Assembly: GCA_010909165.1 (NCBI GenBank)
Contig: MU008217.1
Coordinates: forward strand, 180,979 to 244,978
From: Anthoceros angustus
Taxonomy: Eukaryota; Plantae; Anthocerotophyta
Reading direction: 5' to 3'
Length of the DNA: 64,000 nt
Shown: piece after piece, positions 24,239-64,000 of the stretch
Position numbering within the stretch: position 1 is the first letter of the stretch
How the letters are laid out: every line of letters starts with the position of its first letter
Notes under the pieces: model-generated
Seen by the model: the letters and a program-made list of their open reading frames with translations, nothing else
Told to the model about the DNA's origin: nothing
Databases searched by the model: none
Program-made: the position numbers and the translations under genes

Positions 24239-24442
24239 AGGCCAAATGGACACACATTTATAAGAACGCCATGATTAAGCATCCTGAGCTTGGATCGGTA
24301 CTTAGATGGGGTGCCTAAAGGGAGTGGATGCCCTTGGTGCAAGTAGCTTAGGCACACCATGGTACAAGTTGTTAAGTACCAAGTCCCATGACGGAAACCG
24401 TCCTTAGTGGACTTAAATAAAATTCTTCTTCTTCTTCTTCAT
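24239..24442 (+). mobile_element. ~200-bp SINE-like element with AATAAA and a (TTC)n tail
   Basis: Near-identical to the reverse complement of 32428-32631. Ends ...GTGGACTTAAATAAAATTCTTCTTCTTCTTCTTC. No clear TSD or tRNA A/B box seen. Confidence 0.75.
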
Positions 24443-25131: not shown

Positions 25132-27628
25132 ATGGCCACAGTATGGCAACCGGAACCGTTGTGGACACAACGAATGGGTGTGTCTACAGGGATTCTACCA
25201 GGAGCTCCCGCTCACCTCGCTTCAGAGAGTCAATTTCCGGCAAACAACCAAGTCTCCAGGTGCAGCAGAGTAAGGAGCCCAACAATTCCACTTCCGAAAG
25301 AATGTGTGGGTGGGGACGGGTTATCCAGGGATGCTTGTCGCCAGGACGAGGAGCACTTGTGGCAACCAACCATGCGGTGGGACAACAGACTAGATACTAA
25401 GAGCTCACGTTCGCCTGACTTCCGGCGTAAGGGGTCCGGCGAGGTCCTGTGGTTAAACAGCATGTTTAAGCCAGCTTGGGTTGATGAGCAGCTCGTTTCC
25501 TTGGATATACAGATGGGTCGTGGTGCCTCTCCTTTGAAGTCGAGCTCTACGAAAAAGCTTGAACCTGGCAGGCGTGAAGGATCGGGAATGGGCGTCGTAA
25601 CTGCTGGAACCGTGAGCATATCATGTCTGCAGGGGAAGCTTTCTGAGGCCGTTGGAGCCCTGGAATCTGTGGCGCAGACAGACTATGCTATTTCTCATTC
25701 TCTGTTTTATACTTGGGGAACCGTATCTTGCGCATGTATGCATGTGGAGGTAGGCTTCACGAGGCCATGGATGTGTTCACCAGGGTGGGAAAACCAGATG
25801 CCTTCATGTGGTTTTCCCTAATCTCTGCATATGTCAAGCATGGGAAACCCAATGAGGCCATACATGTGTACCATGAGATGCGTAAGTCAGGAGTGAAGGC
25901 GGATGCTCACGTCTTTGTAGCTGCCCTTCAAGCTTGTGCATTTGCCGCCGACTTGGAATCTGGCAGAAAAGTGCACTGTGAGTGTTGCACAGTGGCATTC
26001 CTCTTAACTTGTTTGTTGGTACCTGCCTGGTGGATATGTATTCAAATGTGGTGAACTGAAAGATGCACGCCAGGTTTTTGATAGCATGAACACGAAGAAT
26101 GTGGTTACATGGAATGCCCTGATAGCTGGGTATGCAAAACGTGGCGAACTGGAAGATGCACGTCGGGTTTTCGAAAGCTTGGCCACGAAGGATGTGGTGA
26201 CATGGACGGCACTGATTGCTGGGTATGCACAGCAAGGACTCGGCCAAAAGGCGCTTGTTTTGTATGGAAAAATGGAGCAGGAGGGCCTCACTTTGGCTGA
26301 CCATTTTACTTTTGCTTGCCTTCTGAAGGCTTGTGCAAGCATTGGTGCCTTACAGAGGGGCAGGCAGCAACCATCTAGGGGACTGCTGACTGACGTAGTG
26401 TTGGGCAACTGCCTGGTGGACATGTATGCAAAATGGACGGCACTGATTGCTGGGTATGCACAGCAAGGACTCAGGTAAGAGGCGCTGGTACTGTATGGAC
26501 TAATGGAGCAAGAGGGCCTGCTCGTGGCGAACGATGTTACTTTCGTTTGCCTTCTGAATGCCTGTGCAAGCGCGGGTGCCTTGCAGAAGGGCAGGCAGCT
26601 GCACTCACAAATTGTAGAAAGAGGATTGCTTGATAGCATAATTTTGGGCAACTGTCTGGTGGACATGTATGCAAAATGTGGTGTTCTGGAAGATGCACGT
26701 CAGGTTTTTGACAGCATGGCTACGAAGGACGTGGTTACATGGAATGCCCTGATATCTGGGTACGGTACTTGTGATGAGGGTCACAGAGCACTAGCTTGTT
26801 TTGAGGAGATGTTAGTTGCCGGTACTCAGCCTGATGGTGCTACTTTTACTTGCCTTCTTGTGGCATGCAGTCATGAGGAGCTGGTCGACGAGGGTTGCAA
26901 GCGTTTTGATTCCATGGCTGAACAGCATGGCATCATCCCTACTCTTGAGCATTACAATTGCATGATTGATCTTCTTGGGCGTGCAGGCCGTTTAGATGAG
27001 GCAGAGAAGATGCTGTTATCATGCGACGGCCAAAGTGATGTCGTGGGCTTGACGTCTTTGTTGAATGCCTGCAAAAGTCACGGGGATATAGAGAGGGCGA
27101 TGTGGTGTTTTAAGGCACTGTCAGGCTGGACCCTCAAAATATGCGCATGTGCTCATGAAAAATGCCTATGCAGATGCAGGTAGGTGGACCGATGTAGACA
27201 GGATTAAAACACAGAGAATGGCTGCAGGAGCTAACAAGAACCCTGCAGTGGCAAGCATTGAGGCGAATAAGCAGGTACATAGATTTTTGGTGGGAGTAAG
27301 GAGAGATGATATTGCGCTTAAGGTAGAGAGCACGAAAACACGACTGAAGCAAGAGGGAGGCCACGTACCTCAAACGAAGCTGGTGTTGAAGCCACTGTGT
27401 GAGAAAGAAAAGGACGAGGCGCTTTGTGGGCTCTAGCGTTTGGTCTCTTGAACACTCCGAATGGGACACCTCTGGTGGTAACAAAGAATCTACGGATGTG
27501 CAGTGACTGCCACAGTTACGGAGATCATGTCAAGGCTTGAACAGAGAGACATTGTTGTAAGGGACGGGTACCGTGTGCATCGACTCGCAGCTGGTTCTTG
27601 CACTGGTAAGGGTCGACCGCGAGAATAA
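25132..27628 (+). pseudogene. PLS-class PPR RNA-editing factor with E-DYW:KP (GRP-type) C-terminus; disrupted
   Basis: PPR motifs (KDVVTWNALIAGY, LGNCLVDMYAKCG.LEDARQVFDSM), E domain (HYNCMIDLLGRAG), then [25 protein letters not shown]|[11 protein letters not shown]...[10 protein letters not shown]...RDIVVRDGYRVHR..GSCTGKGRP. Lesions: several frameshifts, in-frame TAA at ~26476, deleted half-motifs, and a deletion at ~27430 that removes the zinc-binding HxE. Confidence 0.9.
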
Positions 27629-31874: not shown

Positions 31875-32427
31875 GGAAGCATGAACCGAGATGCGTGATC
31901 CAAAATCAAGCGACAAGAGCCCTGGAATGCGAGACCAGTGCCCAGGGCAGCAGCAACCCAACTAACGCTCGTCCTCCTGGACGGTAGTAGCCCCTAAGCA
32001 ACACAGATGACTCCATCCAATCACCGTCCCCGCATCTGCACATCTAGACAGGTGGCAGCCCGGTGTACCGCGATGCCAGTGCCTGCGATTCCGCCACGAC
32101 CACTAGTAGCACTACAGCAGGAGCTGTGGAGACAAATACTAAAGAGGGGTGCCCGAGTGCGGGAAGTCGCAGGATCAACTGGGAGCTGGCCCAGGAAAGC
32201 AGAGGGAGGCTTGCTCCAGCTTGATAGCGCAGGCGCCCGCCGCAGCCTGACCAGAAGCATGCAAAATCATTCGCAGCACAGGGCTCGTTGCCTTGCGCAT
32301 ATCACTCGCACTCGACGCTGGCCATTCACACGAAGTTGCCACGCACAGCGCAAGCATTGGGATGACAAAACCTGGCTAAGTACGTTATGGGATGATGTGA
32401 GAGATTTGAAATTGACGCAGCGTGTCT

Positions 32428-32631
32428 GAAGAAGAAGAAGAAGAATTTTATTTTGAGTCCACTAAGGACGGATTTCCGTCATGGGACTTGGTACTTGACA
32501 ACCTGTACCATGGTGTGCCTAAGCTACTTGCACCAAGGGCGTCCACTCCCTTTAGGCACCCCATTTAAGTACCGATCTAAGCTCAGGATGCTTAATCACG
32601 GCGTTCTTATAAATGTGTGTCCATTTGGCCT
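32428..32631 (-). mobile_element. ~200-bp SINE-like element, second full copy
   Basis: Reverse complement of 24239-24442 with few substitutions; the (GAA)n run at its left end is the tail. Confidence 0.75.
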
Positions 32632-37059: not shown

Positions 37060-37262
37060 CATTCCTCCTCAGCCTCCTTGGCCGGGCCTTCTCCTCCTCC
37101 TTGGCCTTGACTTGGGCCTCCTCTCCTGGCCTTGACTGGGCTTCGCCTCCTGGCCTTGACTGGGCTTCTTCGCCTCCTCCTTGGCCTTGACTGGGCTTCT
37201 CGCCTCCCTCGGCCTTGGGCTTCTCTTCTCCTCCTGGCCTTGACCTCCTCTTCGCCTCCCTG
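37060..37262 (+). repeat. Degenerate ~22-bp pyrimidine-rich tandem repeat (CTCCTTGGCCTTGACTTGGGC...) in the family-1 LTR; repeated at ~39185-39290
   Basis: Directly visible imperfect units. Confidence 0.85.
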
Positions 37263-40200
37263 GCCTACGCTTGCTTAAAGAGCCAGCCGCCGAGCTCGCC
37301 TAGCCTAGCATCGCCCAAGACGCCCAGCACGCCCAGACGCCCAGCATCAGCACTAGCTTAGCATCACCCAGCATCGCCAAGCCGCCTAGCATCACTAGCA
37401 TCACAGCCCAGTACGCCCATCTAGCACACACGAGATCATAGCTTGAACAGGAGAGTAGCTCGACGCCGTGGGCACAAACACACCTCCCCACGAACAACAC
37501 GCAAATTCCTCACATCGCCTCCTGAGTCATAGCTTTGGCCTCCTCACAACGCCTCAGACAGATATCTACAAGATCCGAGCTTGTCCTCAATGGAAGGGTC
37601 TATATATACTAGACTGCATCGATATTCCTAAGATATCCTATTGGCATCAAGATATGCCGTAAATATCCTAAGAATACACTATAATATGCAATATGCCAAA
37701 GCATATTACTTGAGCTTATCCACTTAGCTATTGTATCCTAAGAATACACTATAATATGCAAGGAATATGCCAAAGCATATTACTTGAGCTTATCCACTTA
37801 GCTATTGCTAACCATGTTTAATTAACACTAATCAATGCTTAATTAACATAAGCACTTTAGATTAATTAATACCTAATTACTTACTTAAAGATAAGTAATT
37901 AGATTAATTAATGCTAATCAAACACTAAACCCAAGTGCGTAGATTAGTATCACTGCATTTAACATTCTCATCATGCCTTTTTTCCTATACTTAAAAAATT
38001 CTAAATTATCACAGGAAAAAAAGAGAAAAATAGAAGAGTCTCAAGACAATGCTCCAACTTATGGCCCTTCAAAGGAGTTCACTGAATTTGGCAAATGGAT
38101 GAATAACTTCCAATATCCGCCAATATTCCAAGATCCAGAAACTGGAGACAGCACTCTATGTGGCCACGGTGTCAGCATTTAGGAGCAGATGTGAAAGTGA
38201 TGAGACAAGATCGCAAAACGCCAGCGTAGCAAACACCAAACCTTTATACTATAGGCACCGCCTAACGATCGATCACCAAGAATCGACTTTAAAAAGGAAA
38301 CAAAATGGCTGTGGTAATACCTTGAGGGTTGTTTGTTCAAGGGCTTCATGTACCGGACCTTGAGGGGCTCTCTTGGCCAAAACTTGCATACAAAAAAACA
38401 GATAAGAATAGATGCAGTTCTCACTAGCAAAGAAATCAAACAGCAGCGATGGTAGTGGCCTATCCTCGAAAAAATGGCTGGAAGCAAGAGCCCACGAGAC
38501 AGCTGGATGTGGGCGAAGAGGGCTTTACCGAACGTAGATAACAATGTGAACCGCCACGAGGAAATAATTGTGCTTGACGTCGTACCTACGAAGGACGCCA
38601 AGAGCGAGACTTCTTGTCATCGTGGTGGCGGATTTAGAGCTCAAATGAAGCCACCGAGCCCGGCAGCAAAAGATGTGATCATATGGTTACCAGTAGAACA
38701 AAGATCAGAAAGCATCAAGTTGCAATTTCTTGTACCCAAAAGGATCGGAACCAAGATGCTCAAGGAAGCGACCGAAGCGAAGTCCATCGTACACCTGTGA
38801 ACGTGGTGGTGGTGTGGACTACTGACTTCCCTTGGGGTTAAGAAAAGTAGGGTTTTGTTTTTTCGTAGGAGCGAGGACAAAATAAGGCGAAAAGGAGGAA
38901 TAAGCATGGATAGCACTCGACCGCACCGGAGTATACTCCGACCGAGTGGGCAACGACCTGACCTACTATGGCGGTGCACCGACCACGCGGGTAACGGATA
39001 AGTCCGGACCCACCCAGTCCAAGCAGGATAAGTACGCCAGGAAAGTAACTTAGAAGTTGAGCCGTGAGGACGACCAGGCGGCGCCACGTGGACGGCCCGA
39101 GTGGAGGTCGGCATGCACCGCCAGACAGACCTGCCAGGGCCGCAGGCAGTATTCACGCCGGACGCGCGCCAGAAGGCCGAGGCACTCCTTGGGCCTTGAC
39201 TTGGGCTTCGCCTCCTTGGCTTGACTTGGGCTCTTCGCCTCCTCCTTGGCCTTGACTTGGGCTCTTCGCCTCCCTCCTGGCCTGACTTGGCTTCTGCTTA
39301 AAGAGCTAGCGCCGCCGCCCAGCTCCCCGCCTAGCATCGCCAGCACGCCAGCACGCACGCTAGCACGCCCAGCATCGCCAGCATCGCCAGGTAGCTTTAG
39401 CATCACCTAGCACGCTTAGCCACTCTAAAGTTGCCTAGCATCGCCTTAACATCACACTCAAGCCTAGCCGCCTATCCAGTGTACACACATGAGATCATAG
39501 CTTGTAACAGAGGGAGTAGCTCGCACGTGGGCACAAACACACTCTCCCCACGAGAACAACACGCAAATTCCTCACACATCGCCTTCCTGAGTCATAGCTT
39601 TGGCCTCCTCACAACGCCTGTGCAGACATCTAGAGGACAAGCTATGATCTCGAGCTTGTCCTCAATGGAAGGGTCTATATATACTAGACTTCGGCATCGG
39701 CATATTCCTAAGATATCCTATTGGCATCAAAGATACGTAAATATCCTAAGAATACACTATATATTATGCAAGGAATATGCCAAAGCATATTACTTGAGCT
39801 TATCCACTTAGCTATTCTAAGAATACACTATAATATGCAAGGAATATGCCAAAGCATATTACTTGAGCTTATCCACTTAGCTATTGCTAACCATGTTTAA
39901 TTATCACTAATCAATGCTTAATTAACATAAGCATATTAGATTAATTAACACTAATTACTTACTTAAACATGAGTAATTAGACTAATTAATGCTAATCAAA
40001 CACTAAACCCAAGTGCAGAGATTAGTATCACACGGCATGACACATTCTCATCATGCCTTTTTTCCTATACTTAAAAAATTCTAAATTATCACAGGAAAAA
40101 AAGAGAAAAATAGAAGAGTCTCAAGACAATGCTCCAACTTATGGCCCTTCAAAGGAGTTCACTGAATTTGGCAAATGGATGAATAACTTCCAATATCCGC

Positions 40201-41260
40201 CAATATTCCAAGATCCAGAAACTGGAGACAGCACTCTATGTGGCCACGATAAATCCGTGTCGCACTGAGCAGATGGAATGAAGTGATGAGACAAGATCGC
40301 AAAACGGCTGTAGCAAACACCAGCAAACCTTTATACTAGAAAGCACCGCCACTAACGATCGATCACCAAGAACCGACTTTAAAAAGGAAATCCACAGGTA
40401 AGAAGGTCAGTTTGGCTACCTTGAGGGTTGTTTATGTTCCGAAGGGCTTCAGCCGGACCTTGAGGGGCTCTCTCAGGCACTGGGCCCTAAAACTTCTGCA
40501 AGACAAAAATGTGGATAAGAATAGATGCAGTTCTCACTAGCAAAGAAATCAAACAGCAGCGATGGTAGTGGCCTATCCTCGAAAAAATGGCTGGAAGCAA
40601 GAGCCCACGAGATACCGCTTGGATGTAAGAGGGCTTTACCAACGTAGATAACAATGTGAACCGCCACGAGAAATAATGCTTTGACGACTCACAAGGACGC
40701 CAAGAGCGAGACTTCTTGATCGGGTGGCGGTGATTTAGAGCTCACAAGTCGGATGCCACCGAGCCTGGGCAGCAAAAAAAAGATGTGATCATATGGTTAC
40801 CAGTAGAACAAAGATCAGAAAGCATCAAGTTGCAATTTCTTGTACCCAAAAGGGACTGGAACCAAGATGCTCAAGGAAGCGATCGAAGCGAGTCCATCGA
40901 CACTGTGAACGTGGTGGTGTGGACTACGGACTTTGGGGTTAGAACAAGTAGGGTTTTGTTTTTTAGGAGTAAGGATAAAATAAGGCGAAAAGGAGGAATA
41001 AGCATGGATAGCACTCGGACCGCACTGGAGTATACTCGGACTCGAGTGAGGAACAGACCTACTATGGCAGGCACCGACTACGTAACGGATAAGTCCGGAC
41101 CCACTCCGTGTCCAAACAGGATAAGTACGCCAGGAAAGTAACTTAGAAGTTGAGCCGTGAGGACGACTAGGCGACGCCACGTGGACCCCGAGTGGAGGTC
41201 GGGCATGCAGCCAGACCGCTGGGGCCGCGAGGCAGTATTCACGCCCGCGACGCGCGGGCG
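37100..41260 (+). repeat. ~2.1-kb tandem duplication of (family-1 LTR part + unique segment + 5' end of family-2 LTR)
   Basis: Shared anchors at 37973/40053 (ATGCCTTTTTTCCTATAC) and 38813/40918 (TGTGGACTAC). Both copies carry the same internal ~65-bp duplication. Confidence 0.85.
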
Positions 41261-44200
41261 CGTAAGCAGCACGCGCGCGTAAGGCCGAGGGGAGGCGAAG
41301 GTCGCATGTGCACTCGCGCACAGTGGAAGAGGCGCGCCCGCCCGCTTACTAAAGGCGCGTCAAGGGGAAGGTCATGCCGCCGCACCGAGACACCTCGCTT
41401 GCGCCCGCAACCCGGCCTCCGCGTATCTCTTTGAGCGCCCAAGGCCCTCGAGCTGAGGTTCGGAGCAGAACGCGCGGAGGGCGATCGTGCCTCCCCAGCC
41501 AAGAACAAGGGAGGAAGGCGATGGCACCCAAAAGCCTGGAAGTTTGGGAGCCATGGAACCTTGTGGAGCGCAACATTGTGACCCGGCGCTATCCGGACTT
41601 TGGGCCCGGCCCAGGAAGCGGAGAATTGGTGAGGAGTGGCATTTGGATGTGTTCCATGGTCCGACGCTCGACCACTCCGTCCGGAGTTTGCCCGAAGATG
41701 CCGGCGGCGGTCAACAAGGAGGTGCGGTCCAAGAACCTCCGGAGGACCCAAGGCGATGGACCTTGAGGTCCCGAGGCGGCCTACAACCGCCCAAAGGAGG
41801 AAGAGGGGAGTGGTGCCGAGCCCCTCAAGGCGGCGGGGAAGATAGGGCCCAAGGCCGAGGCTCGACGCAGGACCACCAACGGGTTGATATCCGACCGCGG
41901 ATCCGAGTAAGGGCGGTAGCCCGGATCATTGTCCATTGGAACCTACTCACCAAGGTGGATCACCTTGGTGATAATCTATATTCCCGCATGCGCCTGGGAA
42001 GAGGGCGACCGGGAAGGATTATCTTCGCCCGGTTAGCCAGAGGCTCGCAAGCTGGAGCCGAGAAGCCTCGCCATCTGGGCCCCCATACCCGATCCATGTA
42101 TGGGGCATTTCGAGCTCCTCAAGGAAGGAGAGCTTGAGCGAGCCCGGAAGGACCGAGGCCCGCCGGAAGTGGAGCGGCAAGGGCGCCGAGGGAGGAGGCC
42201 GACAAGCCAAACGACTCGGAGGAGGACGATCGAGGATTCCTGACTCCATACGCGAACGGGACCCCTCACCACCTGTGGAAGTATGGGAAGAAATTCCCCG
42301 CCTCCTCCGGTGCCCCAACCAGACCAGCCAGAAGCCCCCCCAGCCCGCCACCACCACAACCACTGGAGCCCCGCCGACAGGGAGAAGAGCGCAAGACCAG
42401 GACCAACGCAGCACCCGACGGTGCACCTCCCCGCCACGAGTGGCAAGAAGAGGAAGTGAAGGAGGGCGAAAGGACGCGCCTGTGGAGCAGGAGGACACGG
42501 CAGCCTGACCAGCCCCCTGCCTCCGATGAAGGGGCAAAGGGCTTGCTCCCGACTCCTCCTCCTCCGAGCCCTGTGAGAAGGAGAGCCAAAAGGGCCAAGG
42601 AAGGGAAGCCAGACTCGTGACCTAAGGGTCCCGATTAGGTCCGAGAACCCACCGACTTACTCCGGATCGGTATGGAGGTCCTCGGACGTGAGATGCCGCC
42701 CACACGGACTTTGTGGGAGCCTCACTGCGGCCGGAAGAAACACGGGTCCTGCTACCGCCATGGACGGTATGCTGGGGTCTCGGGATGGCCGAGAAGACCT
42801 GGGAGGTAGAAGCCACCCGAGGCGCATGGTACTCCTCCAGAGGCTTGGAGGGGCCCAGAGGCGGAAGGCAAGCTCTCGGCCGATTGAGGAAGGAAACGCC
42901 GAGAGAGGGGAGGTCCGTCCATCCGCAAGGACCGGACAAATTCCTTCACCGAGGAACAACAAGTGAAGCCAAGGAGGCCCAAGCGGCGAGGACCTCGCAG
43001 TGAGAGGGCGAGCGCAGAGGCAAGAGGCCCGGGCGCAAGCGGAGCGGCTGGACCGCGGAGGCGGCCCGACGACCGGAGCCAAGCCGGAGAGGCTGTGAAG
43101 GTGGCCAAGGAGGCGGAGGCCACGGCCGATCGCGATCACTACCATCGGCGTGATCGAACCGGTGGAGGGAGGCTAGAGCCACGGCCAACTAAGGCCGAGC
43201 AGCGGAGCAAGCACGACGAGCCGCAGGACTGGAGGCCACCGGGAGACCCTGTGGCACAGGAGGTAGAAGGGAGGGAGCCGGAGGAGCAAGGACACCTTGG
43301 AGTTACAACCCAAGATGCCGGAGCAGCAGGGTTCTCAACGAGAATCCAAGACTTCGAGAGGAGCCTCGTCAAGATGGAGCAGGAGGGCGGAGCAAGCGCC
43401 GCCAGCCTGTGAAGCTCGCGAGGGAGATGGAGGATCTCCACTGGGAGGTGGAGCAAGAAGGGAGATGGAAGACCGCAAGGAGACTTTGAGCGCCCAAACT
43501 ACCATTGAGAGGAATGGTAGTCTGACTGTCGCGAACGCGAGGAGAGCGGCCCACCTGCATGACGAGGCGACGCGATGGAACAGGAGTGACGCCGAGATGG
43601 AGAAGGCTGGGCGGGAGCCCGCAGCCGCTGCGCGAGAGGAGATGGCGGAGTTCACCGGACAGAGGGGAGCGAGGAGCAAGAAGTGCCGGTCCATGAGGAG
43701 GCGGAAGGGAACGCGCTATGGCGCCGCGCGGAGCTGGCGGAGGGAGTGGAGCAGGGTGACCCGGCGGGGTGGGAGGAGGGGGCAGGGCCCAATCAAACTG
43801 GGCAGGGAGGTGGCAAAGGGCAAAGGGATTCGGACTTTGCCTACCACGCCGAGCCCCGAGGAGCCTCCCACCGCTGACGACTGGAAGGCCTGGGAGAAGA
43901 AGGGCATGGGACAAAGAGGGACGGGGCCTGGAGATGACGGAGGGAGAAGAGCAAGAGGAGCGGACGCAGGACTAAAGTTCACCACCCCGCCGGAGAGGAG
44001 GAGGGCCCCGGGGTGCGAGGAGCCAACCCGACCCAAGACAAGGCCTGGGGAGGAGGACCCAGCAAGACGAGGTCCACAGAAAGGGGTCCGAGTTGGGACC
44101 GGACCCGAGTCAAGAGGTCCAACCCCAGAGAGACCCAGACCGACTCGGGAAATAAGACTGACCGGAGTTCGGGAGAGACTGACCCCCGAGGTCCTGACCC

Positions 44201-44972
44201 GCAAGAGGAGCCCCTCTCGACTTACGCTAGGGAGAGAGAAGGGGCCCCACCGGGAGGGGAGGGGGAGGCTGGGAGGATGACGTTGTGGTAACGGGCGGTC
44301 CGACCGCCAGCCCAACCCGGCTGTGATTCCGGAGAGGAGGGTCCCGCCGATCATCCGATTGCCACGCAATGCCGTGAGGAGATAGTGGTATACCGAAATC
44401 AAATGTAATAGGGGTAATAAAGACGACCGGGCGTAGTATAAGAGGGGGGGCCGCAATAAATCATCTTTCTTGGTGTTGATGCCGCTCTGCACCTTTGTGT
44501 GTCTTCTTGCTAACGTGAGTCCCGAGTCACCGAAAGGTGCACGATACCCGGAGATTGAGGTCCCGTGACGGACCTAACGTGTGTGGTGTGTGCAGAAGGG
44601 TGATCGGGACCCGTGGCCTGAGCCGCGCCCGCCGAACCGACCTGTGAGCCGGAGGAACTCCGGGGCGTAGAGCCCGGACGGAGAGGCCCGAACGAGGAGG
44701 TCCGACTGCGGTTTTCTAAGACCGAGAGTGTGAGTGAGAGAGGAAAGGACGGAGGTGTGAGGACGAACGTGAACGAAACGGACGCGAACGGGTCCTTAAA
44801 CGCTTACCCCCGGTGAACGCTGAGTAGTTAGAGTGTGTGCGTGAGACCGAACGGACGCAGTAAGACGAGAATCAAACGCGTAAACGGAGCCTATCATTCC
44901 CTTGGGAACGGACTTCTTCCTACAACGACACGGATTGTGCGCGCTACCGGCCGTCACGAAAGTCGCGCCACA
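40918..44972 (+). repeat. 5' LTR of the family-2 element (~4.05 kb); TATA-like GTATAAG ~44435 and AATAAA ~44455
   Basis: Colinear with 50339-51905+56380-59291 and with 51906-56379. Promoter and polyA motifs recur at ~55812 and ~58706. Confidence 0.85.
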
Positions 44973-50300: not shown

Positions 50301-51905
50301 TTAGTGTTGGCGAGACGCCAACAGTGAGAAGGGGAGTATGTGGACGACTTGGGGGTTAGAAATTAGGTAGGGTTTTGTTTTTTGTAGGAGCGAAGGATAA
50401 AATGAGGCGGAAAAGGAGGAATAAGCATGGATAGCACTCCCACTGGAGCTCCGACCGAGTGAGGAACGGACCGACCTATGGCGCCACGGTAACGGATAAG
50501 TCCGACCCACCTGTGACCAAACAGTGATAAGTACGGTGGAAAGTAACTTAGAAGTTGAGCCGGAGGATGACAGGCGACGCCACGTGACGGCCTCGAGTGG
50601 AGGGCATGCAGGTCAGCCTGCTGTGAGGCCACAGCAGGTATTCACGCGCGCGCGCCAGAAGGCCGAGTACGCGCGCGTAAGGCGCGAAAGCGAGGCGAAG
50701 GGCCGTAAGCCATGCACCGCGCTACGACAGGAAGAGGCGCCCCGCCCTTATTCCCGGCGCAAGGGGAAGGTCATTCGCTCACCGACAATTCCGCCTCGCG
50801 CCCGCAACCCGCTCTCGGGCGTATCTCGACGCCTGGGCACTCGAGCGGCTCACCGCTGAGGTTGGAGCAACAACGCGGAGGGCGCGCAACCGTCGGCCAC
50901 GACAAAGAACCAAGGGAGGAGAAGGCGGCGATGGCACCCAAAAGCTGCGGAAGTTTGGGAGCCATGGAACCTTGTGGAGCGCAACATTGTGACCCGCGCT
51001 ATCCGGACTTTGGGCCCCGGCCTGGAAGCGGAGAATTGGTGCAGGAGTGGCATTTGGATGTGTTCCATGGTCCGACCTTGACAACACACCGGGTCCGGAG
51101 TTTGCCCGAAGATGGGCGGCGGTCAACAAGGAGGTGCGGTCCAAGAACCTCCGGGAGGACCCAAGGCGATGGACCTTGAGGTCCCGAGGCCTACAACCGC
51201 CCAAGGAGGAAGAGGGTGGTGCCGAGCCCTCGGCGGGAAGATAGGTCACAAATGGCGCCGAGGCTCGACGCAAGGACCACCAACGGTTGATATCCGACCG
51301 GATGCCGAGTAAGGGCGGGGCCCGATCATTGTCCATCGAACCGCCACCAAGGTGGATCACCTTGGTGATAATTGGTATTCTCGCATGCGCTGCTGGGGAA
51401 GAGGGCGGACTGGGAAGGATTATCTTCGCCCGGCTTAGGTGAGGCTCGCAAGCTCAGGAGCGAGAAGCCTCGCCATCTGGCCGCCCCCATACCGATCCAT
51501 GTATGGGGCATTTCGAGCTCTCAAGGAAGGAGAGCTTGAGCGAGCCCAAAGGACCGGAGGCCCCCGCAAGTGGAGCGTGCAAGGGCGCCCGAGGTGGAGG
51601 CCGAAAGGCCAACGGACCCGGAGGAGGACGACTGGAGGATTGACTCCATACGCCCTGAACGGACCCCTCACCACCTGTGGAAGTATGGGAGGAACCCCTT
51701 CCTCCTCTGTGCCCCAAGAGACCAGCAGCAGGAGGCGCCCAACCCAATAGCCCACCCACTGTACCACAACCACTGAGCCCGACCAGGGAACCGAAGAGAC
51801 GCAAGACGGTTTTACCAACGGAAGACCTCGGTGCCAAGATTTTACCCGCCTACCTGAGTGGCAAGAAGTGAGGAAGCGGTAAGGAGGGCGTAGTGACGCC
51901 GCCTG

Positions 51906-54900
51906 TGTGGAGTGGACTACGACTTCCCCGGGGTTGGGAAATTAGGTAGGGTTTTGTTTTTTTAGGAGGATAAAATGAGAAAAAAAGGGAAATAAGAGCT
52001 AGCACCGACGCACCGAGTATACTCCGACCCGGAGTGGGAACGACTCAGGCCACGATGGCGCGCGACAAGGTAACGGATAAGTCCGGACCCACCCGTGACC
52101 AGCAGTGATAAGCACGCCGGAAAGTAACTTAGAAGTTGCCGTAAGGGACTAGAGGCGACGCCACGCGGACGACCCCGAGTGGAGGACGGCATGCGCTGGT
52201 CAGACCGTGAACCTTGTCAGCCGCAGAAGCAGGGTATTCACGCCCGGACGCGCGGGGCGGGCGCGCAGAGGCCAGTACGGGCAGCGTGAGGCCGCAGTGG
52301 GCCATGCACTTCCGCGCCAGGACGTGAGGCGCCGTTACCCCAAGGCGGGTCGAAGAAGGCTCACGCGCGCACGAGACACCGCGATCCTCGCCTCCGCAGC
52401 CCCGGCGGTATCTCGGGACAGTGACGCTCGCGCTGCTCACCGCTGAGGCTGAGCAACGCGCCAAGAAGGCGCACGCGCTGCCTCCCGACAAGCCGCCACA
52501 GAACCAAGGGAGGAGAGAAGGCGATGGCACCCAAAAGCCGCGAAGTTTGGGAGCCATGGAACCTTGTGGAGCGCAACATTGTGACCCGCGCTATCCGACT
52601 TTGGCCCGCCCAGGAAGCGGGAGAATTGGTGCAGGAGTGAGGGTGTGTCTGATGGTCTCGACATTTGACACACCGTCCGGAGTTGCCCGAAGATGCCGGG
52701 CGCGGTCAATAAAGAGGTGCCCAAGAACCTCCGGGAGGACTCATGGATGGACCTGAGGTCCCGAGGCATACAACCGCCCCAAGGAGGAAGAGGGAGGGTG
52801 CCGAGCCCCTCAAGGGGAAGATAGGGCCACCCAGCTGGCGTAAGCTCGACGAACGACCATCAACGGTTGGTCGACATCCGACCCGCTGACCGAGTAAGGG
52901 CGGGCCCGATCATTGTCCATCGAACTCACTACCAAGGTGGATCACCTTGGTGATACAGTATTCGCACGCTACCGCAATGGGGAAGAGGGCGATCGGGAAG
53001 GATTATCTTCGCCTGCTTAGCCAGGGCTCGCAAGCTCAGACCGAGAAGCCTTCCATCTGGCCGCCCCATACCCGATCCATGGGGGGCATTTCGAGCTCAA
53101 GGAAGGAGAGCTTGAGCGAGCGCCCGGAAGGACCGGAGGCTCGCCAAGTGGAGCGGGCAAGGGCGCCGGAGGGAGGAGGCCGCCGAAAACCAAACGGGAC
53201 GGAGGAGGACGACCGAGGGGATTCCTGACCCATACGTCCGAACGGACCCCTCACCACCCAGGTGGAAGCAATTCCCCGCCTCCTCCTTCCGTGCCCCAAC
53301 CACAAAGCCCAAGCCACCCCAGCAGCCCCCGCCACCGGCCATCACTCCTACCGAGGAGCCCACGACTGTGAGAGAGCCAAGAGACGCAAGACCACGGCTA
53401 CCAACGCGCACCCTGGCCGGTGCAAGACTCTTCCCCGCCGACCTGAGTGGCAAGAAGCGAGGAAGCAGAAGGAGGGCGTAGTGGGACGCCTGTGGAGCAG
53501 GAGGACACTGCGCAGATCCAGAGCCGGGTCCTGCCGCCGATGTGAAGGGGCAAAGGGCGTGCTCCTGACTCCATCACCTCCGCCGAGCCCTGTGAGGAAA
53601 AGGGTGAGAAGGAGCTCGCCAAAAGGGCCAAGGAGGGGAAGCTGAAAGACTCGTGACCTAAGGGTCCCGATTGTCCGGAGAACCCACCGACTTGCTCGAT
53701 CATATGGAGGAGGTCCTCGACGTGAGATGCCGCCCCGCCACGGACTTTGTGGGAGAGCCTCACCAGGCGGCCGTGGAAGAAACACGCTGGTCCTGCCACC
53801 GCCATGGACGGTATGCCTGGGGTCCGGCGGGATGGCCGAAGACCTGTGGAGGTAGAAGCCACCCGGTGAGGCGCATGGTACTCCTCCGTGAGCAGCTGGA
53901 GGGAGCCCAGAGGCGAGAAGGAAGGCCAAGCTCTGGATTGAGGAAGGAAACGCCGGAGGCGGAGAGGGAGGTCCGTCCATCCGCAAGGACCGGATTCAAA
54001 TTCCTTCACCGGAGGAACAAACAAGGCACTAAGGAGGCCCAAGCCGGGCGGAGGACCGCAGCAGAGGGGCGAGCGCAGAAGCGTAGGACGCCCGGGCAAG
54101 CGAACGGGCGGATCCGCGGAGGCAGGACCGACCGTAGAGCTGTCGAGAGGCTCAGTGAAGGTGGCCAAGGAGGCGGAGGCCACGGCGAAGGCCGATCGCG
54201 ATCACTATCGCGGATCGAACCGGTGGAGGAGGCGGCCGAGAGAGCCACGGCCAATCAAGGCCGAGCAAGTGGTCAAGGGAGCAAGTACTGGCCGAGTGAG
54301 GAGGCATCGGAGGCCAGCACCCGGGAGATTGGGGACCCTGTGGTGCACCAGGAGGTAGAAGGGCGGCGTGGAGCCGGAGGACAAAGAAGGACACTTGGAG
54401 TTGCAACCCAAGATGCACGGAGTGCAGGGGTTCTCAACGAGAGAATCCAAGACTTCGAGCGAGAGGTAGAACGCCTCCTCCGCTTGAAGACGGAGGGAGA
54501 ATAGGCGACGGCAAGGAGTTCGCCGCAAGGTTGCAGCAGGATGTGGCGGGAAGCCGTGAGCTGACGGAGCCCGCCTCGAGAAGGAAGTGGCACCTCCGGA
54601 AAGAATAGACGAGGGAAGAAAGCACCGGAGGAAAGGCTACTTGCTCGTCCCGCCAGGAAGTGTAGAAGGAGCTCACCCATGGCCCGTGAAATCAAGTGAG
54701 CCGGAACAACGAGGAGGAGGAGAACGAGCAAAGCAAGGTTGCAAGAGGTAACTGAGGCAGCCTTGACGGCCTCAAGAGTCCCCACCATACCGTAAGCTTC
54801 ACGGAGACTGCCACAGCGGGCGATCCGCCTGCTGAGAGCACCTCCGAGGAGGGAGTACGTGCCCGGCTCATGTAGAGGAGGCGATTCAAGCAAGTCGACC

Positions 54901-56379
54901 CGACTCGCCTTACTACCACGCAGAGCTCCTCAAGGCTCGAGGTCCCGCGCCACCCCAGGCAGGAGGGTGGACTTCAAGGGATGGAAGGAGGAGCGAGAGA
55001 GGACCTGGGACAAAGACAACTGCTGGAGTCCTAGGAGCTGCTTGATGACCGGCAGCAGCAGCCGAGGGAGAGCATGGAGGAACCGGAGGAGGAAGGTCGC
55101 TCACACCTGAGGTAAGACTCCAAGACCTCGCATGGAAGGACGAGGGAGGATCTTGGAGAGGAAGGGAAAGGGTGCAACCGCATTCGGGAACCAAGGGAGG
55201 GCTCGAGATGAACCCGTGACCAGCCCGTGAGGAGGCATGCCCAGAGCGAGGTCCTGACTTTGTCCGACTCGAGGAAAGGCCGATCCCGAGGTCCGCCTCA
55301 AGGAAGTCCGGACTTAGGGATCCAGACAGTGACGATCCGGACCCGAGGTCCCGACCCTGTGGAAGGGTTGGGTCCGTAAGACCGACCTCAGGGCAAGTCC
55401 GGCCCCGAGGACCTGACTCAGAAGAAGGCCGGCCCAGGAGACCTGGACCCCGAGGGAAGACCTGACCTAGAGGTCCTGGACCCGAGTCCAGACAGTGGTC
55501 CCGAGGTCCAAACTCGGGAGTGGGAGAGCCACCACCACCGATCCATTTGAGGGCCCACGCCAGGGGCCCGCCAGAGAGAGAGGGGAGGACGAGAAGTTGC
55601 TGTCGCCACGCGCAAATGGCTGCACTCGGAAGAGGAAGGGTCACCGGATCATCCGATTGCGCGCAAATGTGGGGGCTGGGGCCGCCAAGAAGGAATCGTA
55701 TCCATTTCACCACCGACCGCGATAGGCGGAATAGGCGTGGTAGTAGGCGGCGGTTAGGCACACGAAATGGCCCTCACCAATAGAGGTGTAATAAAGGCCG
55801 ACCTTCAGTAGTATAAGAGGGCCAAGGCCGCTCAATAAATCATCTTCTTGGTGTTGATGCTCTGCACCTTTGTGTGCCTCTAAACGTGAGTCCCGAGTCA
55901 CCAAGGTGCACGATACCCGGGAGATTGATCGTGTGGTCCCGTGACGACCTAACGTGTTGTGGTGTGCAGGAAGATCGGTGACCCGTCGTCCGGAGCCGCC
56001 ACCAAAGACCGAATCCGGACTGAACGTGTGAGCCGGAGGAACTCCGGAGGGCGCAGAGCCGGACGGAGAGGCCCGCGGAACGACGTGAGGAGGTCCGGAC
56101 TGTAACCCGCCTTTTTCCTAAGACCGATGAGTGTAGCGTGAGGGAGAGAGGAAAGGGCGGAAGTGTGGTGGCGAATGTGAGCGATCACGGACTTGACAGG
56201 TCCCTAAGCGTTTGCCATAGGGCTGTCACGGTGAGCGTTGTGTTAGGCGTAGTATGTGTGTTGTGAGCAGGCGCAAAGTGAGTAGAATCACACGAAGGCA
56301 GCAGCCTATCATTCCCTTGAGCGGACTTCTTCCTACAACGACCTTGATTTGTACGCGGCGGTGGCTGAGAAGTCAGCCA
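51906..56379 (+). mobile_element. Solo LTR of family 2 nested inside the 3' LTR of the same family
   Basis: Full LTR-length copy. The host LTR sequence GACGCC-TGTG|GAGCAG (intact at ~42475-42490 and ~53485-53500) is split across its two ends. Confidence 0.75.
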
Positions 56380-59300
56380 GAGCAGTCCTTGGCACCCGAG
56401 CAGTCCTGCCTCCGAAGCGAGGAAGAGGCAAGGGCTGCTCTGGGACCCCCTCCTCAGGAGCCTCAGGAAAAAGAGGGCGGAGAAGGACTACCGTGACCAA
56501 AAGGGCCAAGGAGGTGAAGCTGAGCTCAGACTGCTTTTCGAGACCTAAGGGTCACAGTGGAGTCAGGGCGGTCCGGACTTACTCGGGACTGCAGTATGGA
56601 GGTCCATGATCGGAGAAATGCCGCAGCTCCCTACGGACTTTGGGAGCCTCACGATGTGCGTGGAAGAAACACGGGCGGGTCCACGGCTTCTGAGCGTATG
56701 CTTTGGGGTCTCGGGATGGCCGAGAAGACCCAGGAGGTAGAAGCCACCCGAGGCGTATGGTACTCCTCCGGGGAGGCGGTTGGAGGGGCCCGGGAGGCCG
56801 GAAGGCCGAAGCTCTCGGCCGGGTGAGGAAGGAAGCGGGAGGCGAGAGGAGAAATCTGGTCCATTCGGGACGGACTAAATTCCAGTGGAGCGGCGGGCAG
56901 TAAGGAGGCCCAGCGAGGACCTCTGCAGGCGGAGGGTGGCCGGAGGCGGAAGAGGCCGGGCGCAAGCAGGCGGGCTGGGACTGGGAGGCGGCTGACTAGA
57001 CGAGCCAGGCTCGGTGAAGGTGGCGAGGCGGAAGCCGCGGCAAAAGACCGCGATCACTATCGGCGTGATCGGCCGGTGGAGGGGCTGGGGTAGCCAGCCA
57101 ATCGAAGGCGGCGGGCGTGGAGCAAGCCAGACCGTCTGCTGAGCCACGGAAATCCGGGGACCTCAGGCAGCGGGAGGAGGTAGAAGGGGCAGCGGAGGCT
57201 GGAGGGCAAGCAGACACTTGGGTTACAACTCAAGGCAGCGTCGGAGCAGCAAGGGGTTCTCAAGAGAGTCAAGACTTGAGGAGATGGGCGCCTCAGCTAC
57301 ACTGAAGATGGGCAGGGGCGGAGCAAGCGCGGACCGAGGCCGGGAAGCTCGCGACAAGGAGATGGAGGATCTCGGACTCAAGCTCCGTGAGGTGGAAGCG
57401 GCCAGCGGGGATGGAAGACCGCAAGGAGACCTTGGGCTGACTTCAAACTACCATTGAGAGGAATGGTAGTGCGGGCGTGGTCGCGGGCATGACATAGACT
57501 CCGGCTACATTGGCGGAACAGGCGATGGAACAGGAGGCGGGGCGTCGCCCGAAATGGAGAAGGGACAGGCGAAGCCCGATCGCGAGTTGCCCGGCCAAAT
57601 GCAGAGGAGATGGCGGAGTTATGACGAGAATGGGACGGAGAGCCACTGGAAGCAGACAAGAAGCTGCTTGGTCGATTGAGGAAGGCGGAAGAGCAGCTGC
57701 GTTATGGCTGGTAAGGCGCGGAGGCGAGCGGCAGGAGTTGGGCAGTGGAGCAGTGGCGGTTGCGGGGAGGTGGCCGGCGCCCTTGCACGCGTGGCGGCCG
57801 GCTCCGGCTATCAAACTGGCGGGGAGGTGGTCCAACAATGGGCAGCCTCCCCGGAGCACCTATGGCGAAGGGGTATGTGCTCCGGGCACCGTGGAAGAGG
57901 CAATCCAACAAGTGGATCTTGACTTTGCTATTACTACCGAGCTCCCTCTGCGAGGCCTCCCACCTCCGCAATAGATTTGACCCCTCGGAAGGCTCGAGAG
58001 GGAAGAAGAAGGCATGGGGACAAACGGGACTCCCAGGCTTTGGAGATGACTTGAATGGGAGAAGAGCCTCAAGAGGAGCGAGACGCAACTGACCTGTGGT
58101 AAGTTCACCGCAACCGCCTGGAGAAGGAGGTGACCTCAAAGGCGCATGAGGAGCCAACCCGACCCAAGACCGTTTGGGTAGGGATGAGGACCTAGCAAAG
58201 ACGAGGTCCATGAGAAGGGTCCTGAGTTTGGGGACCGGGACCAGACAAGTTGACCGAGGTCCGAACCCCTCAGACGAGGCCGGACCCAACGACCTGTGAA
58301 ATAAGACTGACTGGAGTTCAGACTGAGTCTAGACCGACCTCGAGGTCCCGGACCAGTGAAGAGGAGCCCTCTCACTTACGCTTAGGAGCAGATAATGGCC
58401 CCACCGTGAGGGGGACCCACGGGAGGCTGTGGAGGATGACGTTGTGGTAACGGCGGCCGCCGACCGCCACGGTGAGCCCAACCCGATGTGATTCCGGAGA
58501 AAGGAGGGGTCCCGCCACGGATCATCCGATTGGGTGCGCCTGCAATCGCTGGACGGGAGATTGACCACCAATCCCCATGGAACCCGGACCTTCCCACCCC
58601 ACCGACGAAGGAGATAGGGGAGGAAATAGGATGGTAGGCGGCCGATTAGGTATACCGAAATCCATCACCGTAATAGGTGTAATAAAGACGCCCGACTTGG
58701 GCGTAGTATAAGAGAGCTGGGGCTGCCACAGATAAATCATCTTTCTCTTGGTGTTGATGCGCGTTCTTGCGGACCCTTGTGTGTCTTCTTGCTAGCGTGA
58801 GTCCGAGTCACTCGGCCGAGCCACCGTCCGGAGAGATTGATCGGGGTTACGGTGGCCGAACCTAACGTGTTGTGGTGTGTGTGGGGAGGGGTGGCGGGAT
58901 CGTGCTCGTCAGAGCCCGGCCGGCCGAGCCGGACCGGCGTGGCCGGAGGGACTCCGGGAGGCGTCTGAGCCGGACGGAGAGGCAGCTGAGAAACGACGGA
59001 GGAGGTCGGGCGTGGTAACCGCGTCTTTCCTAAGGCCCGGTAATTAGTGTGTGATGGAAAGGCGGACTAGAGGTGGTGGCCAACGTGAGCGATGGGTGAC
59101 GGGTCCTTAGCGTTGGCCAGATGCGTGCGGTGAACGTTACGAGTAGTTAGCGCGGCGGTAATGTGTAATGGGTGAGGCGGACGCAAAGTAAGGCGAGAAT
59201 CGCTGAAGCAGCTAAGCAGACTGTCATTCCTGGCAGACTCCTTCCTACAACGACACGGATTGTGCGCCCGGTGCTGGCCGAAAGTCGCGCCTGGTGGGCG

Positions 59301-59819: not shown

Positions 59820-60420
59820 TTCTCCGAAGCCCTAGGTCTTTTTGCATGCTGTCTTTCGAAGGCCAAGGTGTTCCCGGCTCTGTTCCGAAGGCTTAGGCAT
59901 TTTGTCCAGTCTTTAGTTTCGCAGGCCAAGGTCTTTCAGGCTCTGTTTCGAAGGCAAAGGCCTTTTGCATGCTGTCTTTCGAAGGCCAAGGTGCTTCCAG
60001 GCTTTGCTCCGAAGGCTTAGGAGCTGTCTTGTCTCTAGTTTCGCAGGCCAAGGTTCTTTCAGGCTCTGCTCCGAAGGCTAAGGCCTTTTTTTGCATGCTA
60101 TCTTTCGAAGGCCAAGGTGTTCCAGGCTCTGCTCCGAAGGCTAAGGCCATTGTTCAAGTTTCGTACGCCAGGGTTCTTTCAGGCTCTGCTCCGAAGGCTA
60201 ATGCCTTTTTCCAGCCTTTGTTCGAAGGCCAAGGTCTCTCTGAAGTTTGTTTCGAAGGCCAAGGTCGTTTTGCTGCTCTGTTTTGAAGGTTCTTTTTCGA
60301 AGGCCAAGGGGTTTCCCAGGTCCGAAGGTCAAGGTGTCCCTGCTCCTAAGGTCAAGGTTGTTGCTGAGTCCGAAGGCCAAGGTGTTTTTGGCACCGAAGT
60401 CCAAAGTTTCTGTTAGCTTA
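59820..60420 (+). repeat. Degenerate tandem array with core TTTCGAAGGCCAAGGT / GCTCTG(T/C)TCCGAAGGC (higher-order period roughly 55-65 bp)
   Basis: More than 15 core copies visible. Confidence 0.9.
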
Positions 60421-62045
60421 AAGGTTAAGGCCTTTCGCTCCCATGTGAAGTCGCGGTCCTTTTGCGTTTTACGTTGTTCTCTGTTGCCTCGTTGTCTCCA
60501 TTGTTGTTTTGGCTCTTGTTGTTTTGTGCGCTTTTGGTGTTGTGTACATCGCTATGGCGGATAGTGTGTCGGCTAAACACGGTCTCTATTTGCATCGGCT
60601 TGTTTCGTATCTTTAATACGCTATTGAAGGTGTTCTTTGCTTATGCGCGTCTTGCTTCTTATTCCTTGGGGTATGACTCTTTGCATGCTAAGATGTTATC
60701 GATTCCTCTCTTGATCACATCTCTCGTTGCTAGTTGATTGATTCTCGTTCTTTGTAGTTTTCTCGTTCGTTGTTGATCTTGTTTCTTTGTTGGCATGCCG
60801 ACGTCGATGGTGTCACGCTTGGCTTTTATAAGCGATAGCGATAACTCTCTTCGATTAAGAGCTTTGAGCTTCGTGGTTAGTTGAAACTTATTTGTCGTTA
60901 GAGGCGTTTGTCTGTGATTCTTGGATTCTTTATTTCCCCTTCTATGGAAATCTGTTGTTTGTTATTTGTTTGTTTGTTGGAAGTGTCCCTTATATCTGTT
61001 CGTTTTGATGTTCTCTGGTTTCGTGGCTTGGTATCATTTTGTTTGTCTCACCTGTTTTCTTGTGCTGATGCTTTGTCCCGTGATCTGCGTTCTAACTTCG
61101 TTAGTTAGGTGTCTGTTACTTTGTTTTGACTCCGTGTAGTAATGTTCTTGCAACTTTGCTTGAATGTGTGTTTGTTGTTTGTTTTAGCAGTGAAAGGTTC
61201 TGTATGAGCTATTATCTCCTTGTGACAGCGTTTGCTTTTTTTTTCGTGTTTTCTTACTCTCTGCTCGCTTCTTTTGATGCAGTCAAGTTTGCCGGTTGAA
61301 GTTGAGGACGTAATAGGGGACTCAGTTCGGGACGTCACCGAACGTCTGTTGTTTCAACTGTGTTTCAATATTCTTTCTTTAACAGACTCCGCGCAATATC
61401 GGCGGATTCTTGAAAGCCTCTTTTGCGCTTTGGGCGGAGGTTGCCACCCCTTTCTCATATCAAGCAAAACACGTGTTTTTAAAAGAGATGTCTTTGAATG
61501 AGTTCCACTTAGAACAATGTAAGTAATATCGAGGTTTTTCCATGTATGCACACTTTTGTTTGATGCGGTCGTCCGGCGCACCCTTCAGACTTACTGGGAA
61601 AGGCGGTGCGCACTATGGGTCCAAAACACGTAATATGCATTCAAATCAAAGTCGGGCATTTTCCACGAAGGGTCAAAAGCAGAATTATACGGTCAACGGA
61701 CGAGCCCCTCATCTACAAGTCACAGCTACCCAAAGGGTCATCTACTTCAACCAAATTGAGCTCCGAATCGCACCGTTTCTACATTTTCCAAATCCGCCTT
61801 TCCGTGTCACCAAAGTCGCCTTCAACACCAAAGCGAGCGTCGGAGCCTCTGTATGCGGTGGTAGTGTGCCGTTTTCATCCCATATTGTCAATGCCGGTTG
61901 GTCTTCAACCGGCGGTCGTCACAGTGCTGCGAGTCCTTCATTCGACCCTTCTTTCCAAGCAAGCTATACACTTGCATTTTCATCAATGCCTCTGCCAGAT
62001 CTCCTTTGCCCAAAACTTGCAGGGCCCGCGAAAACTTATCTGTTG

Positions 62046-64000
62046 TTATTTCTTGAACTCGTCGGCGGCCGCTCCAACGTTCACTCGTTGTGACATATAC
62101 ATTGAGCATCGTGCGTCTTTGTCAATGGCCACAACGTTCCTTTTCCGTTGTATCCGGCCACCAAAATGATCCCGATCGCACGTCAACAATCCGATCGTCT
62201 TCGTTGGAGAACATGTTCACCAACATGCCTAATAAGCCCAGGTTTACGATATGGCGTCGACCATCTTATCACCGATGTGGTAAATCGACTTCTTCACCAC
62301 GGTCCATGTCGGATAACTCTTGGCGGCTGTTTGATGTCTTTGCGGAAAAGAGGAGCTTTTCCGACATTGGACTCTCCTCACTGCGCTTCCAACATCAAAT
62401 ATTCCACTTTCCACTGCACCGCTTAGGTGGGATGTTGGTTTTCTCCCATACCGAGTGCGAATGACTCCTTTCACGCAGACCTCAAAGCCTCCACGGCTTG
62501 AATCACCCCATCCACCCCATGCATAAGAATTATCCGGAACACATCGCTCGTGGTCTTCTCGTTGAAAGAGGCGATGATCTCTTTCAATTCTTCTTCAACG
62601 AAAGCCTTGTCATTCTCATGCGTGTAAACCTCGAGGAGGTCGAGAAGAAGAGTATACCTCCTCGGTGGCAAAAATCCTTTCCTTTCATATCCAAAATGTC
62701 TCGATGCACCACGATATGCCACTTTGTCCGAAGACCGGGCACTCTGGCCTGCCACCATCCATGTCCTTGTCGGCCATTTGTTTTCGCTCTTCTTCCATCC
62801 GTTTCGATTCTTGCGCTATAAACAAAATCTTGGAAAGGTTTTGGCGAGCTTTCAAATCCTCAATGTCTCCCGGTTTACGCAAGCAGCAGCGGTGGTCGAC
62901 AGAACTCATTGGCGAGTGCGCGGTCAGCGGCGCGCTTGGCGTCGGCGCCTCCTGTGAACCGGCGCGGCAAATGTCGCCGGTCGGCCAGCGCACTCCGCGT
63001 CGCCGTCAGCGCACGTCGCCGGTCGGCGGCGCAGAGTGCGCCCTCGGCGGCGCCTGCGTGCGCCCGGCCGAGCGCGTTGCGCCTGGGTAACAAACAACAG
63101 TCGCGGTCGGCGCACTACCTAATCGCCGGTGACCGGCGCACTCTACGAATACACTCACTTACCACTTTCGCAAAATTGTTTGAAACTTCGCCAATTCCTT
63201 GGCCTTGTAGAAGCTGTTTGGCGACTTGAGGTCGCACACTTCATAGCCTTCGAAGGCATGCTCGATAAGGTTAATCTTCTTCCTGTTGCCAACATCGTAT
63301 CCATATCTTTTAGCTGCGGTTTCCTTGGATGACCTTACGGGTCACGCTATCAACATCTCTTCACCTTCTCGTCCTTGGGACTCCTTGGAATGCTCTCCAT
63401 GCCCTTAGAGCATTGGAGCGGACGAGTCGATTAGGGGCCCCGGTGCTGTTGTAGTTGGGTCTTGTGGCTTCCGTTTGCTTTCGCTCGCCGTCGTCCCACA
63501 TGTCTGTTCACACTGCTCTGGAGTTCGCACTTCTCCACATCCGGAAAATGGTGTCCACGTTCTCCCACAATTTACCCGCACCTCGCAATCCTCAGCGAGT
63601 CTTCACATCCACCATCTTACATAATCGGTGTCCTTGGTTTCCAGCCTCCTCCGGCATCCAACTTGTACACATTGAACTTCCTTTGCATCGGTTTTCCATC
63701 GGGTGTCCGGTGCCAAATCTCAAGCTCATCATGTATGTAGCGTACTTGTTCAATAAAACCAAGCTTCTTCCTCTTGCGCATACACATTGTGATCAAGCTG
63801 CCGGCACCGCATTTCTTCCTCTGTCAAGCTGCATATACATGGCCCTCAAGCCATTGAAATTTATCTTCCGCGGATACATTTGAGACGATGCATGGCGGCA
63901 TAGCAATAGTTCCCTCGGCACCCCTAGGGTGTAATCTTTGAGCTCGATCTCCTCGTGCATCTTCTTTCTTCAAGCAACCTTTGTCTTTGGATCAATCATG
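62046..64000 (-). CDS. Intron-containing gene (5' end outside the window) with a C-terminal beta-class amino DNA methyltransferase (N6_N4_Mtase-like); frameshifted in this assembly
   Basis: Joined across indels, in beta order: RYTLLL-DPP-G (motif IV, ~62641-62627, reconstructed); VWEKTN...VEYLML; PYRKP.LLGMLVNMFSNEDDRIVD..SGS.FLVAG...RNVVAIDKD (motifs X, I, II; ~62253-62115). GTAAGT...TTACCCAG intron at 63162-63083. Confidence 0.75.

Follow-up and report, generated by a model that had tools for sequence, protein, structure and literature searches.

Does the gene at the end of this window (the whole 64-kb stretch of DNA that was analysed) supply a plant-type genome with a working DNA methyltransferase of bacterial type, or is it the remnant of something else? 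The original prediction took it for a single intron-bearing gene of a beta-class amino-methyltransferase that might write 4mC or 6mA. Based on translations, profile searches, frameshift-aware alignments and contigs from a DNA run of the same organism, we consider it likely that the minus strand of 61606-64000 carries the 3' portion of a dead copy of a mobile-element gene that exists in many copies, that the C-terminal domain of this gene comes from a beta-class (PF01555-type, N6-adenine/N4-cytosine) DNA methyltransferase, and that the copy belongs to a Sola1-type family.

Location and parts of the relic

The translations of the three minus frames over 61400-64000 placed the relic on the minus strand, with its stop codon at 62046-62048 and with a gene that runs past the end of the window at 64000. 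No second copy of the methyltransferase relic was found elsewhere within the 64-kb window. The parts that could be distinguished, listed from the 3' flank upstream, are as follows.

61606-62048, minus strand: 3' flank that is repeated along with the gene, according to the depth profile of the DNA run
62049-62141, minus strand: C-terminal block after motif I (RNVVAIDKD..., an R-x-F-I-G-I-E-type motif), obtained by translation and ending at the stop codon
62141-62170, minus strand: IILVAGYNGK, which takes the place of the G-S-G-T-T-x-x-A-A segment and is read in a third frame; the path is hand-drawn and the hmmsearch of the X-joined read-through extends across it
62164-62241, minus strand: motif X/I block LLGMLVNMFSNEDDRIVDVRSGS, the AdoMet-binding region and the best six-frame segment in the window against the PF01555-type HMM
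62237-62293, minus strand: block ending in TPYRKP, the equivalent of the H-P-x-x-K-P motif, which both the frameshift-aware alignment and the hmmsearch of the read-through connect to motif I
62294-62380, minus strand: stretch between the two in-frame stops, on the reading path
62381-62463, minus strand: SVWEKTN (I-I-W-x-K type) and KVEYLMLEA (h-E-y-i-l type), in two frames, aligned to HMM columns 113-140
62474-62876, minus strand: coding-like stretches at the expected place of motif IV, without a recognisable catalytic motif in the translation or in the profile and pattern searches
63162-64000, minus strand: upstream ORF pieces (63162-63341, 63620-63823 and 63796-63969) whose fold was not recognised; the start of the gene lies past the window end

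On the same strand, RNVVAIDKD occupies 62141-62115, TPYRKP is followed in a different frame by LLGMLVNMFSNEDDRIVDVRSGS over 62258-62167, and VWEKTN and KVEYLMLEA lie at approximately 62445-62428 and at 62410-62384, respectively. Two long ORFs (183 and 187 aa) were additionally seen on the plus strand at 61542-62169, opposite the 3' end of the relic; nothing was found that supports them, and they are probably spurious.

Homology to beta-class methyltransferases

In the beta class, the catalytic region is followed by the H-P-x-x-K-P motif and then by motif I, which binds AdoMet. Because the standard libraries are blind to the single stop-free pieces of the relic, each of which holds only 20-60 residues of true reading, we built our own PF01555-type profiles, which were seeded from E. 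coli YhdJ and two viral-contig scans and whose sampled members were confirmed as PF01555 by Pfam. Pfam itself returned no PF01555 match on any of the short stop-free pieces, even at E 10, and no methyltransferase match was obtained for them in Pfam, PHROGs, NCBIfam, a PDB sequence search or the ESM Atlas. When the 2567 six-frame segments from the window were compared with the PF01555-type HMM, only the motif-I piece (62125-62265) matched, with an E of 0.025 and on the motif-I columns; hhalign against a 25-sequence alignment placed it on these columns as well (P 6.4e-5).

The frameshift-aware HMM search, which had been proposed along with the original prediction, was run with our own PF01555-type profile and set the relic far above the rest of the window. 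The null distribution consisted of 81 tiles that covered both strands of the whole window. With the larger profile, 62463-62164 scored 29.7 bits against a null mean of 16.5 (sd 1.5, maximum 19.8), and across the three frameshift-aware runs the relic reached 28.7, 34.4 and 29.7 bits against null maxima of 20.2, 24.2 and 19.8, respectively. With regard to METHYLTRANSFERASE homology, the locus stood at the top of the window by approximately 9 sd, with its blocks in the correct order. The alignment path was collinear, with the W-x-K block first, then TPYRKP and finally motif I (HMM columns 113-219), which confirms the beta-class order that had been claimed for the W-x-K, P-x-x-K-P and motif I blocks. 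Moreover, the hmmsearch of the read-through, in which an X was placed at each break, aligned the same blocks from W-x-K to G-S-G. The motif strings that had been quoted are present, all on the minus strand, and exceed chance according to the HMM, hhalign and the frameshift-aware alignment.

The individual blocks contribute unequally. Taken alone, the W-x-K block scored 17.7 bits, below the null maximum of 20.2, and its support comes only from its position and order. The post-motif-I block was placed by hhalign on the RKFIGIEIN columns, directly after the motif-I columns, although weakly (E 0.23), and its own score of 11.8 bits in the frameshift-aware alignment was not significant. The core of motif I is degenerate, with VRSGS in place of P-F-x-G-S-G. 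As far as the sequence comparisons go, homology to the beta-class PF01555-type amino-methyltransferases is supported over the C-terminal two thirds of the domain. A pairwise tblastn with YhdJ was set aside as too noisy, and an initial permissive frameshift alignment was discarded for over-fitting.

Repetition in the genome and nuclear context

Contigs of the same-organism DNA run were aligned to 61000-64000, and 142 of them aligned at 80-100% likeness. The summed contig depth, which in this run (containing 11% of the words) is not equivalent to copy number, was 100-430 over 61606-62817 compared with 0-3 just below 61600; it was 0 over 62818-63019 and 8-42 farther upstream in the gene. We regard 61606-62817 as a repeat because of this very high depth, and the high-copy unit comprises the methyltransferase segment together with approximately 440 nt of its 3' flank. 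The edge of the high-depth segment near 61606-61700 is possibly an element end. Exact-match contigs confirmed the assembly at 61682-61762 and 62241-62324, and at position 62570 most of the depth matched the window sequence. The sole contig that aligned over 62152-62240 was a variant in which motif I differs by +2, +3 and -1 letters, and hence the copies differ by indels inside this motif; the window version of approximately 40 bases there (including 62181-62193) had no contig that confirmed it.

The contig also carries host genes. A 448-aa ORF on the minus strand (20781-22124) has 2-Hacid_dh_C, PGDH_inter and ACT domains and corresponds to a D-3-phosphoglycerate dehydrogenase (PGDH) gene in one long exon, and a PPR-repeat protein of the plant type is encoded on the plus strand at 26503-27180. 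Because the PGDH and PPR genes are located on the same contig as the relic, it is a plant-type nuclear contig and not a contaminant. The possibility that the locus maps to a contaminant was ruled out by these genes alongside it, and together with the high depth they bear out the eukaryotic nuclear repeat context that had been proposed.

Other repeats were observed within the window. The PPR-repeat ORF is flanked by the two arms (24239-24441 and 32427-32631) of a 96% inverted repeat, which are separated by 8 kb. An LTR-like repeat of approximately 4 kb occurs in several partly tandem copies with 68-80% identity (40914-44969 and 50339-59291), and 37177-39168 and 39185-41256 form an 84% duplication.

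Proposed origin

The closest published parallel is Sola1-1_Ec32, a 21.5-kb element of Ectocarpus, in which a 1104-aa gene for a ParB plus N4C/N6A methyltransferase protein lies opposite the transposase (PMC12477816). According to the proposal made there, the methyltransferase part modifies the DNA of the element itself, and the ParB part binds to repeated sites in it (PMC12477816). By analogy with this element rather than from the window sequence, we assign the relic with moderate confidence to a Sola1-type cut-and-paste transposon. In the mechanism that we suggest, the relic would be a copy of a Sola1-type family present in this genome, and this family would carry a cargo gene with ParB-like and methyltransferase parts opposite its transposase. 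The ParB part of an intact element would attach to repeated sites within it, and the methyltransferase fold would serve to mark or bind the DNA of the same element. The multi-copy state of 61606-62817 in the genome, as seen from its depth, is a property that Sola1-type membership would entail. Neither a transposase nor a ParB domain nor a terminal inverted repeat was visible within the window, which ends inside the gene and includes at most one element end. The upstream pieces at 63162-63969 gave no match in Pfam, PHROGs, NCBIfam or the Atlas, and a ParB-like domain may lie past the window end.

Attempts to recover intact copies, a check that had been suggested with the original prediction, retrieved no intact family member for alignment by any search. 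The search for homologous proteins with 62247-62594 returned nothing, the metagenome scan with a 56-aa C-terminal piece yielded no relative, and none of the eight window ORFs had an exact match in the protein collection. In the long-protein search, the methyltransferase alignment and the window pieces were placed behind a long first row; there were four matches when this row was an unrelated 1150-aa protein and 2249 when it was a 933-aa bacterial methyltransferase, all of which were bacterial and none of which had a ParB. The plasmid search for a ParB-methyltransferase scaffold produced only a 227-aa methylase. The representative search with 62474-62815 returned only two repeat proteins, both of which proved to be spurious by tblastn.

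A true methyltransferase remnant could also have reached this genome in a different manner, i.e., with a giant-virus segment, with another transposon superfamily or by a direct bacterial transfer that was later made repetitive, which we consider unlikely. The PF01555 relatives in the profile included giant-virus contigs (GVMAG), neither a transposase nor a terminal repeat can be seen in the window, and methyltransferase and ParB cargo is also known in Plavaka elements (bioRxiv 10.1101/2025.02.11.637652); however, the stretch is high-copy and transposon-like.

Resemblance to armadillo repeats

It is very improbable that the similarity arose by chance or that the strongest block is an armadillo-type helical repeat from a gene that never was a methyltransferase. 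A 47-aa piece matched Pfam Arm with an E of 0.086 and 13.4 bits (cutoff 20.6), a designed armadillo protein was found in the PDB (E 0.017), the Atlas score was 0.93 with 153 shared features, and there is neither a Pfam PF01555 match nor a motif IV to speak for a methyltransferase. We nevertheless rated the armadillo reading low because it explains a single block and is accompanied by no tandem or neighbouring units of approximately 42 aa; its sole match, moreover, is below the threshold. The methyltransferase reading, in contrast, accounts for four blocks that are collinear, correctly spaced and all on one strand, and the locus is a 9-sd outlier in the window.

Decay of the reading frame and absence of the catalytic motif

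For the methyltransferase remnant, the reading path from 62724 to 62049 requires at least seven frame changes and passes two in-frame stops (62378-62380 and 62294-62296), while the profile-driven alignment contains five frame changes within 62463-62164. Both in-frame stops are substitutions, not indels. The locus is not one ORF, and the reading as a single intron-bearing gene fails on these frame switches and on the stops that are crossed. The pattern [DSNT]PP[YFWH], and even PP[YFW], is absent from all minus frames of 61600-64000, where the nearest approach to the catalytic tetrapeptide is LPPRRY at approximately 62670. Additionally, the N-terminal half of the profile, which contains motif IV, gave nothing above background at the relic. 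A motif IV had been claimed for this region; with the tetrapeptide missing in every minus frame and this half of the profile at background, the claim is not confirmed.

It is barely credible that the gene is intact and functional and owes its frame changes to indel errors in the assembly: the sole short-read contig at 62181-62193 does differ from the window by indels, but the two stops are substitutions, the frame changes within 700 nt number at least seven, exact-match contigs confirm 61682-61762 and 62241-62324, most of the depth at 62570 agrees with the window, no frame holds a catalytic motif and no RNA run was found that contains the stretch.

The locus is a pseudogene without a catalytic tetrapeptide and is, therefore, not a writer of any mark, which disposes of the suggestion that it might write 4mC or 6mA. 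The relic is an inert fossil that lacks the capacity to code for an enzyme. Among the observations on which the original prediction was based, the quoted motif strings stand as more than chance, but motif IV, the single ORF and the 80-nt intron were not confirmed. Its interpretation was correct in the beta-class homology and the eukaryotic nuclear repeat context, but not in the writing function or in treating the intron as proof of eukaryotisation.

Comparison with known systems

What Sola1-1_Ec32 shares with the relic is a long transposon gene with several exons that encodes a PF01555-type domain at its C-terminus, within a repeated element. The relic differs in that only its decayed 3' part is present, in that a ParB, a transposase and terminal repeats are not seen and in that the catalytic tetrapeptide is absent; moreover, the genome that hosts it is of the plant type and contains PPR and PGDH genes. 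The pairing of ParB with an N4C/N6A methyltransferase on a transposon is already published (Ectocarpus, 2025; PMC12477816), and the relic is an ordinary decayed member of that published kind. In our literature search, no description of ParB-methyltransferase transposon cargo in land plants was found.

The beta-class enzymes of bacteria, phages and giant viruses (PF01555, e.g., E. coli YhdJ) share with the relic the collinear W-x-K, h-E-y-i-l, H-P-x-x-K-P, motif I and R-x-F-I-G-I-E blocks. In contrast to these enzymes, the relic has no DPPY/SPPY, its motif I is degenerate, its frame is broken and each of its pieces is below Pfam detection. MpDN4MT1 of Marchantia and N4CMT of bdelloid rotifers are, like the relic, eukaryotic genes of prokaryotic amino-methyltransferase ancestry. 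They are, however, intact and expressed host genes, with TSPPY in the case of MpDN4MT1, whereas the relic is a dead repeat copy without SPPY. We regard as distinctly improbable the more far-reaching scenario of a streptophyte or land-plant Sola1 lineage whose ParB-methyltransferase cargo lost (D/S)PPY and served DNA binding, self-recognition or an unusual mark, and which may be kin to the ancestor of the plant 4mC writers (DN4MT1). The motif-IV region of the relic is unreadable and speaks neither for this scenario nor against it.

The Plavaka elements of Bostrychia have the accessory genes PAG2 and PAG3, which combine an N6 methylase with SET, and ParB with a 2OG oxygenase (bioRxiv 10.1101/2025.02.11.637652). 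These are likewise transposon cargo in which ParB-like DNA binding and DNA-modifying domains occur beside repeat arrays, but they belong to another transposon superfamily and to another domain combination than the relic.

The relic matters little by itself, as it is one more dead copy that is truncated by the window. As data points, it contributes that, within the stretch, repetition is highest in the segment that bears the methyltransferase (61606-62817), that the copies vary by indels inside motif I and that the relic has no canonical catalytic tetrapeptide. The wider interest lies in possible DNA modification in a plant by intact members of the family, which is a matter for the intact copies.

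Candidate intron and the GC-rich array

Two further features lie upstream of the methyltransferase segment.

63081-63160, minus strand: candidate 80-nt GT-AG intron (GTAAGT, then a pyrimidine tract and CAG), recognised from the sequence
62885-63150, minus strand: GC-rich array of approximately five degenerate repeats of approximately 22-40 nt (core CGGTC..GGCGCAC), without coverage in the DNA run contigs

An 80-nt intron is plausible, judging from its good splice signals, and it would join frame 2 to an Ala/Arg-rich reading that ends at the stop at 62878. The choice is not unique: a GT-AG alternative of 258 nt (63162 to 62905) keeps the frame as well and takes out the entire GC-rich array, and an extra GTAAGA donor is present at 63620. 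Moreover, the 80-nt candidate lies inside the array and contains two of its units, with further units filling 62920-63080. No contigs from the RNA run of the same sample aligned over the relic, and no RNA run was found that contains the stretch. Since at least two GT-AG choices keep the frame and no such RNA run was found, the intron does not demonstrate eukaryotisation as had been argued, nor is it required for ruling out contamination.

The GC-rich repeats could serve the element as binding sites or could simply form a minisatellite. A similar GC-rich unit (61567-61584) was observed close to the border of the high-depth segment. Farther out, approximately 1.7 kb past the 3' end of the gene, 59825-60334 is a tandem array in which periods of 29, 63 and 123 nt are nested and whose units contain CGAAGGCCAAGG, and a T-rich stretch (60450-61600) extends between this array and the gene.
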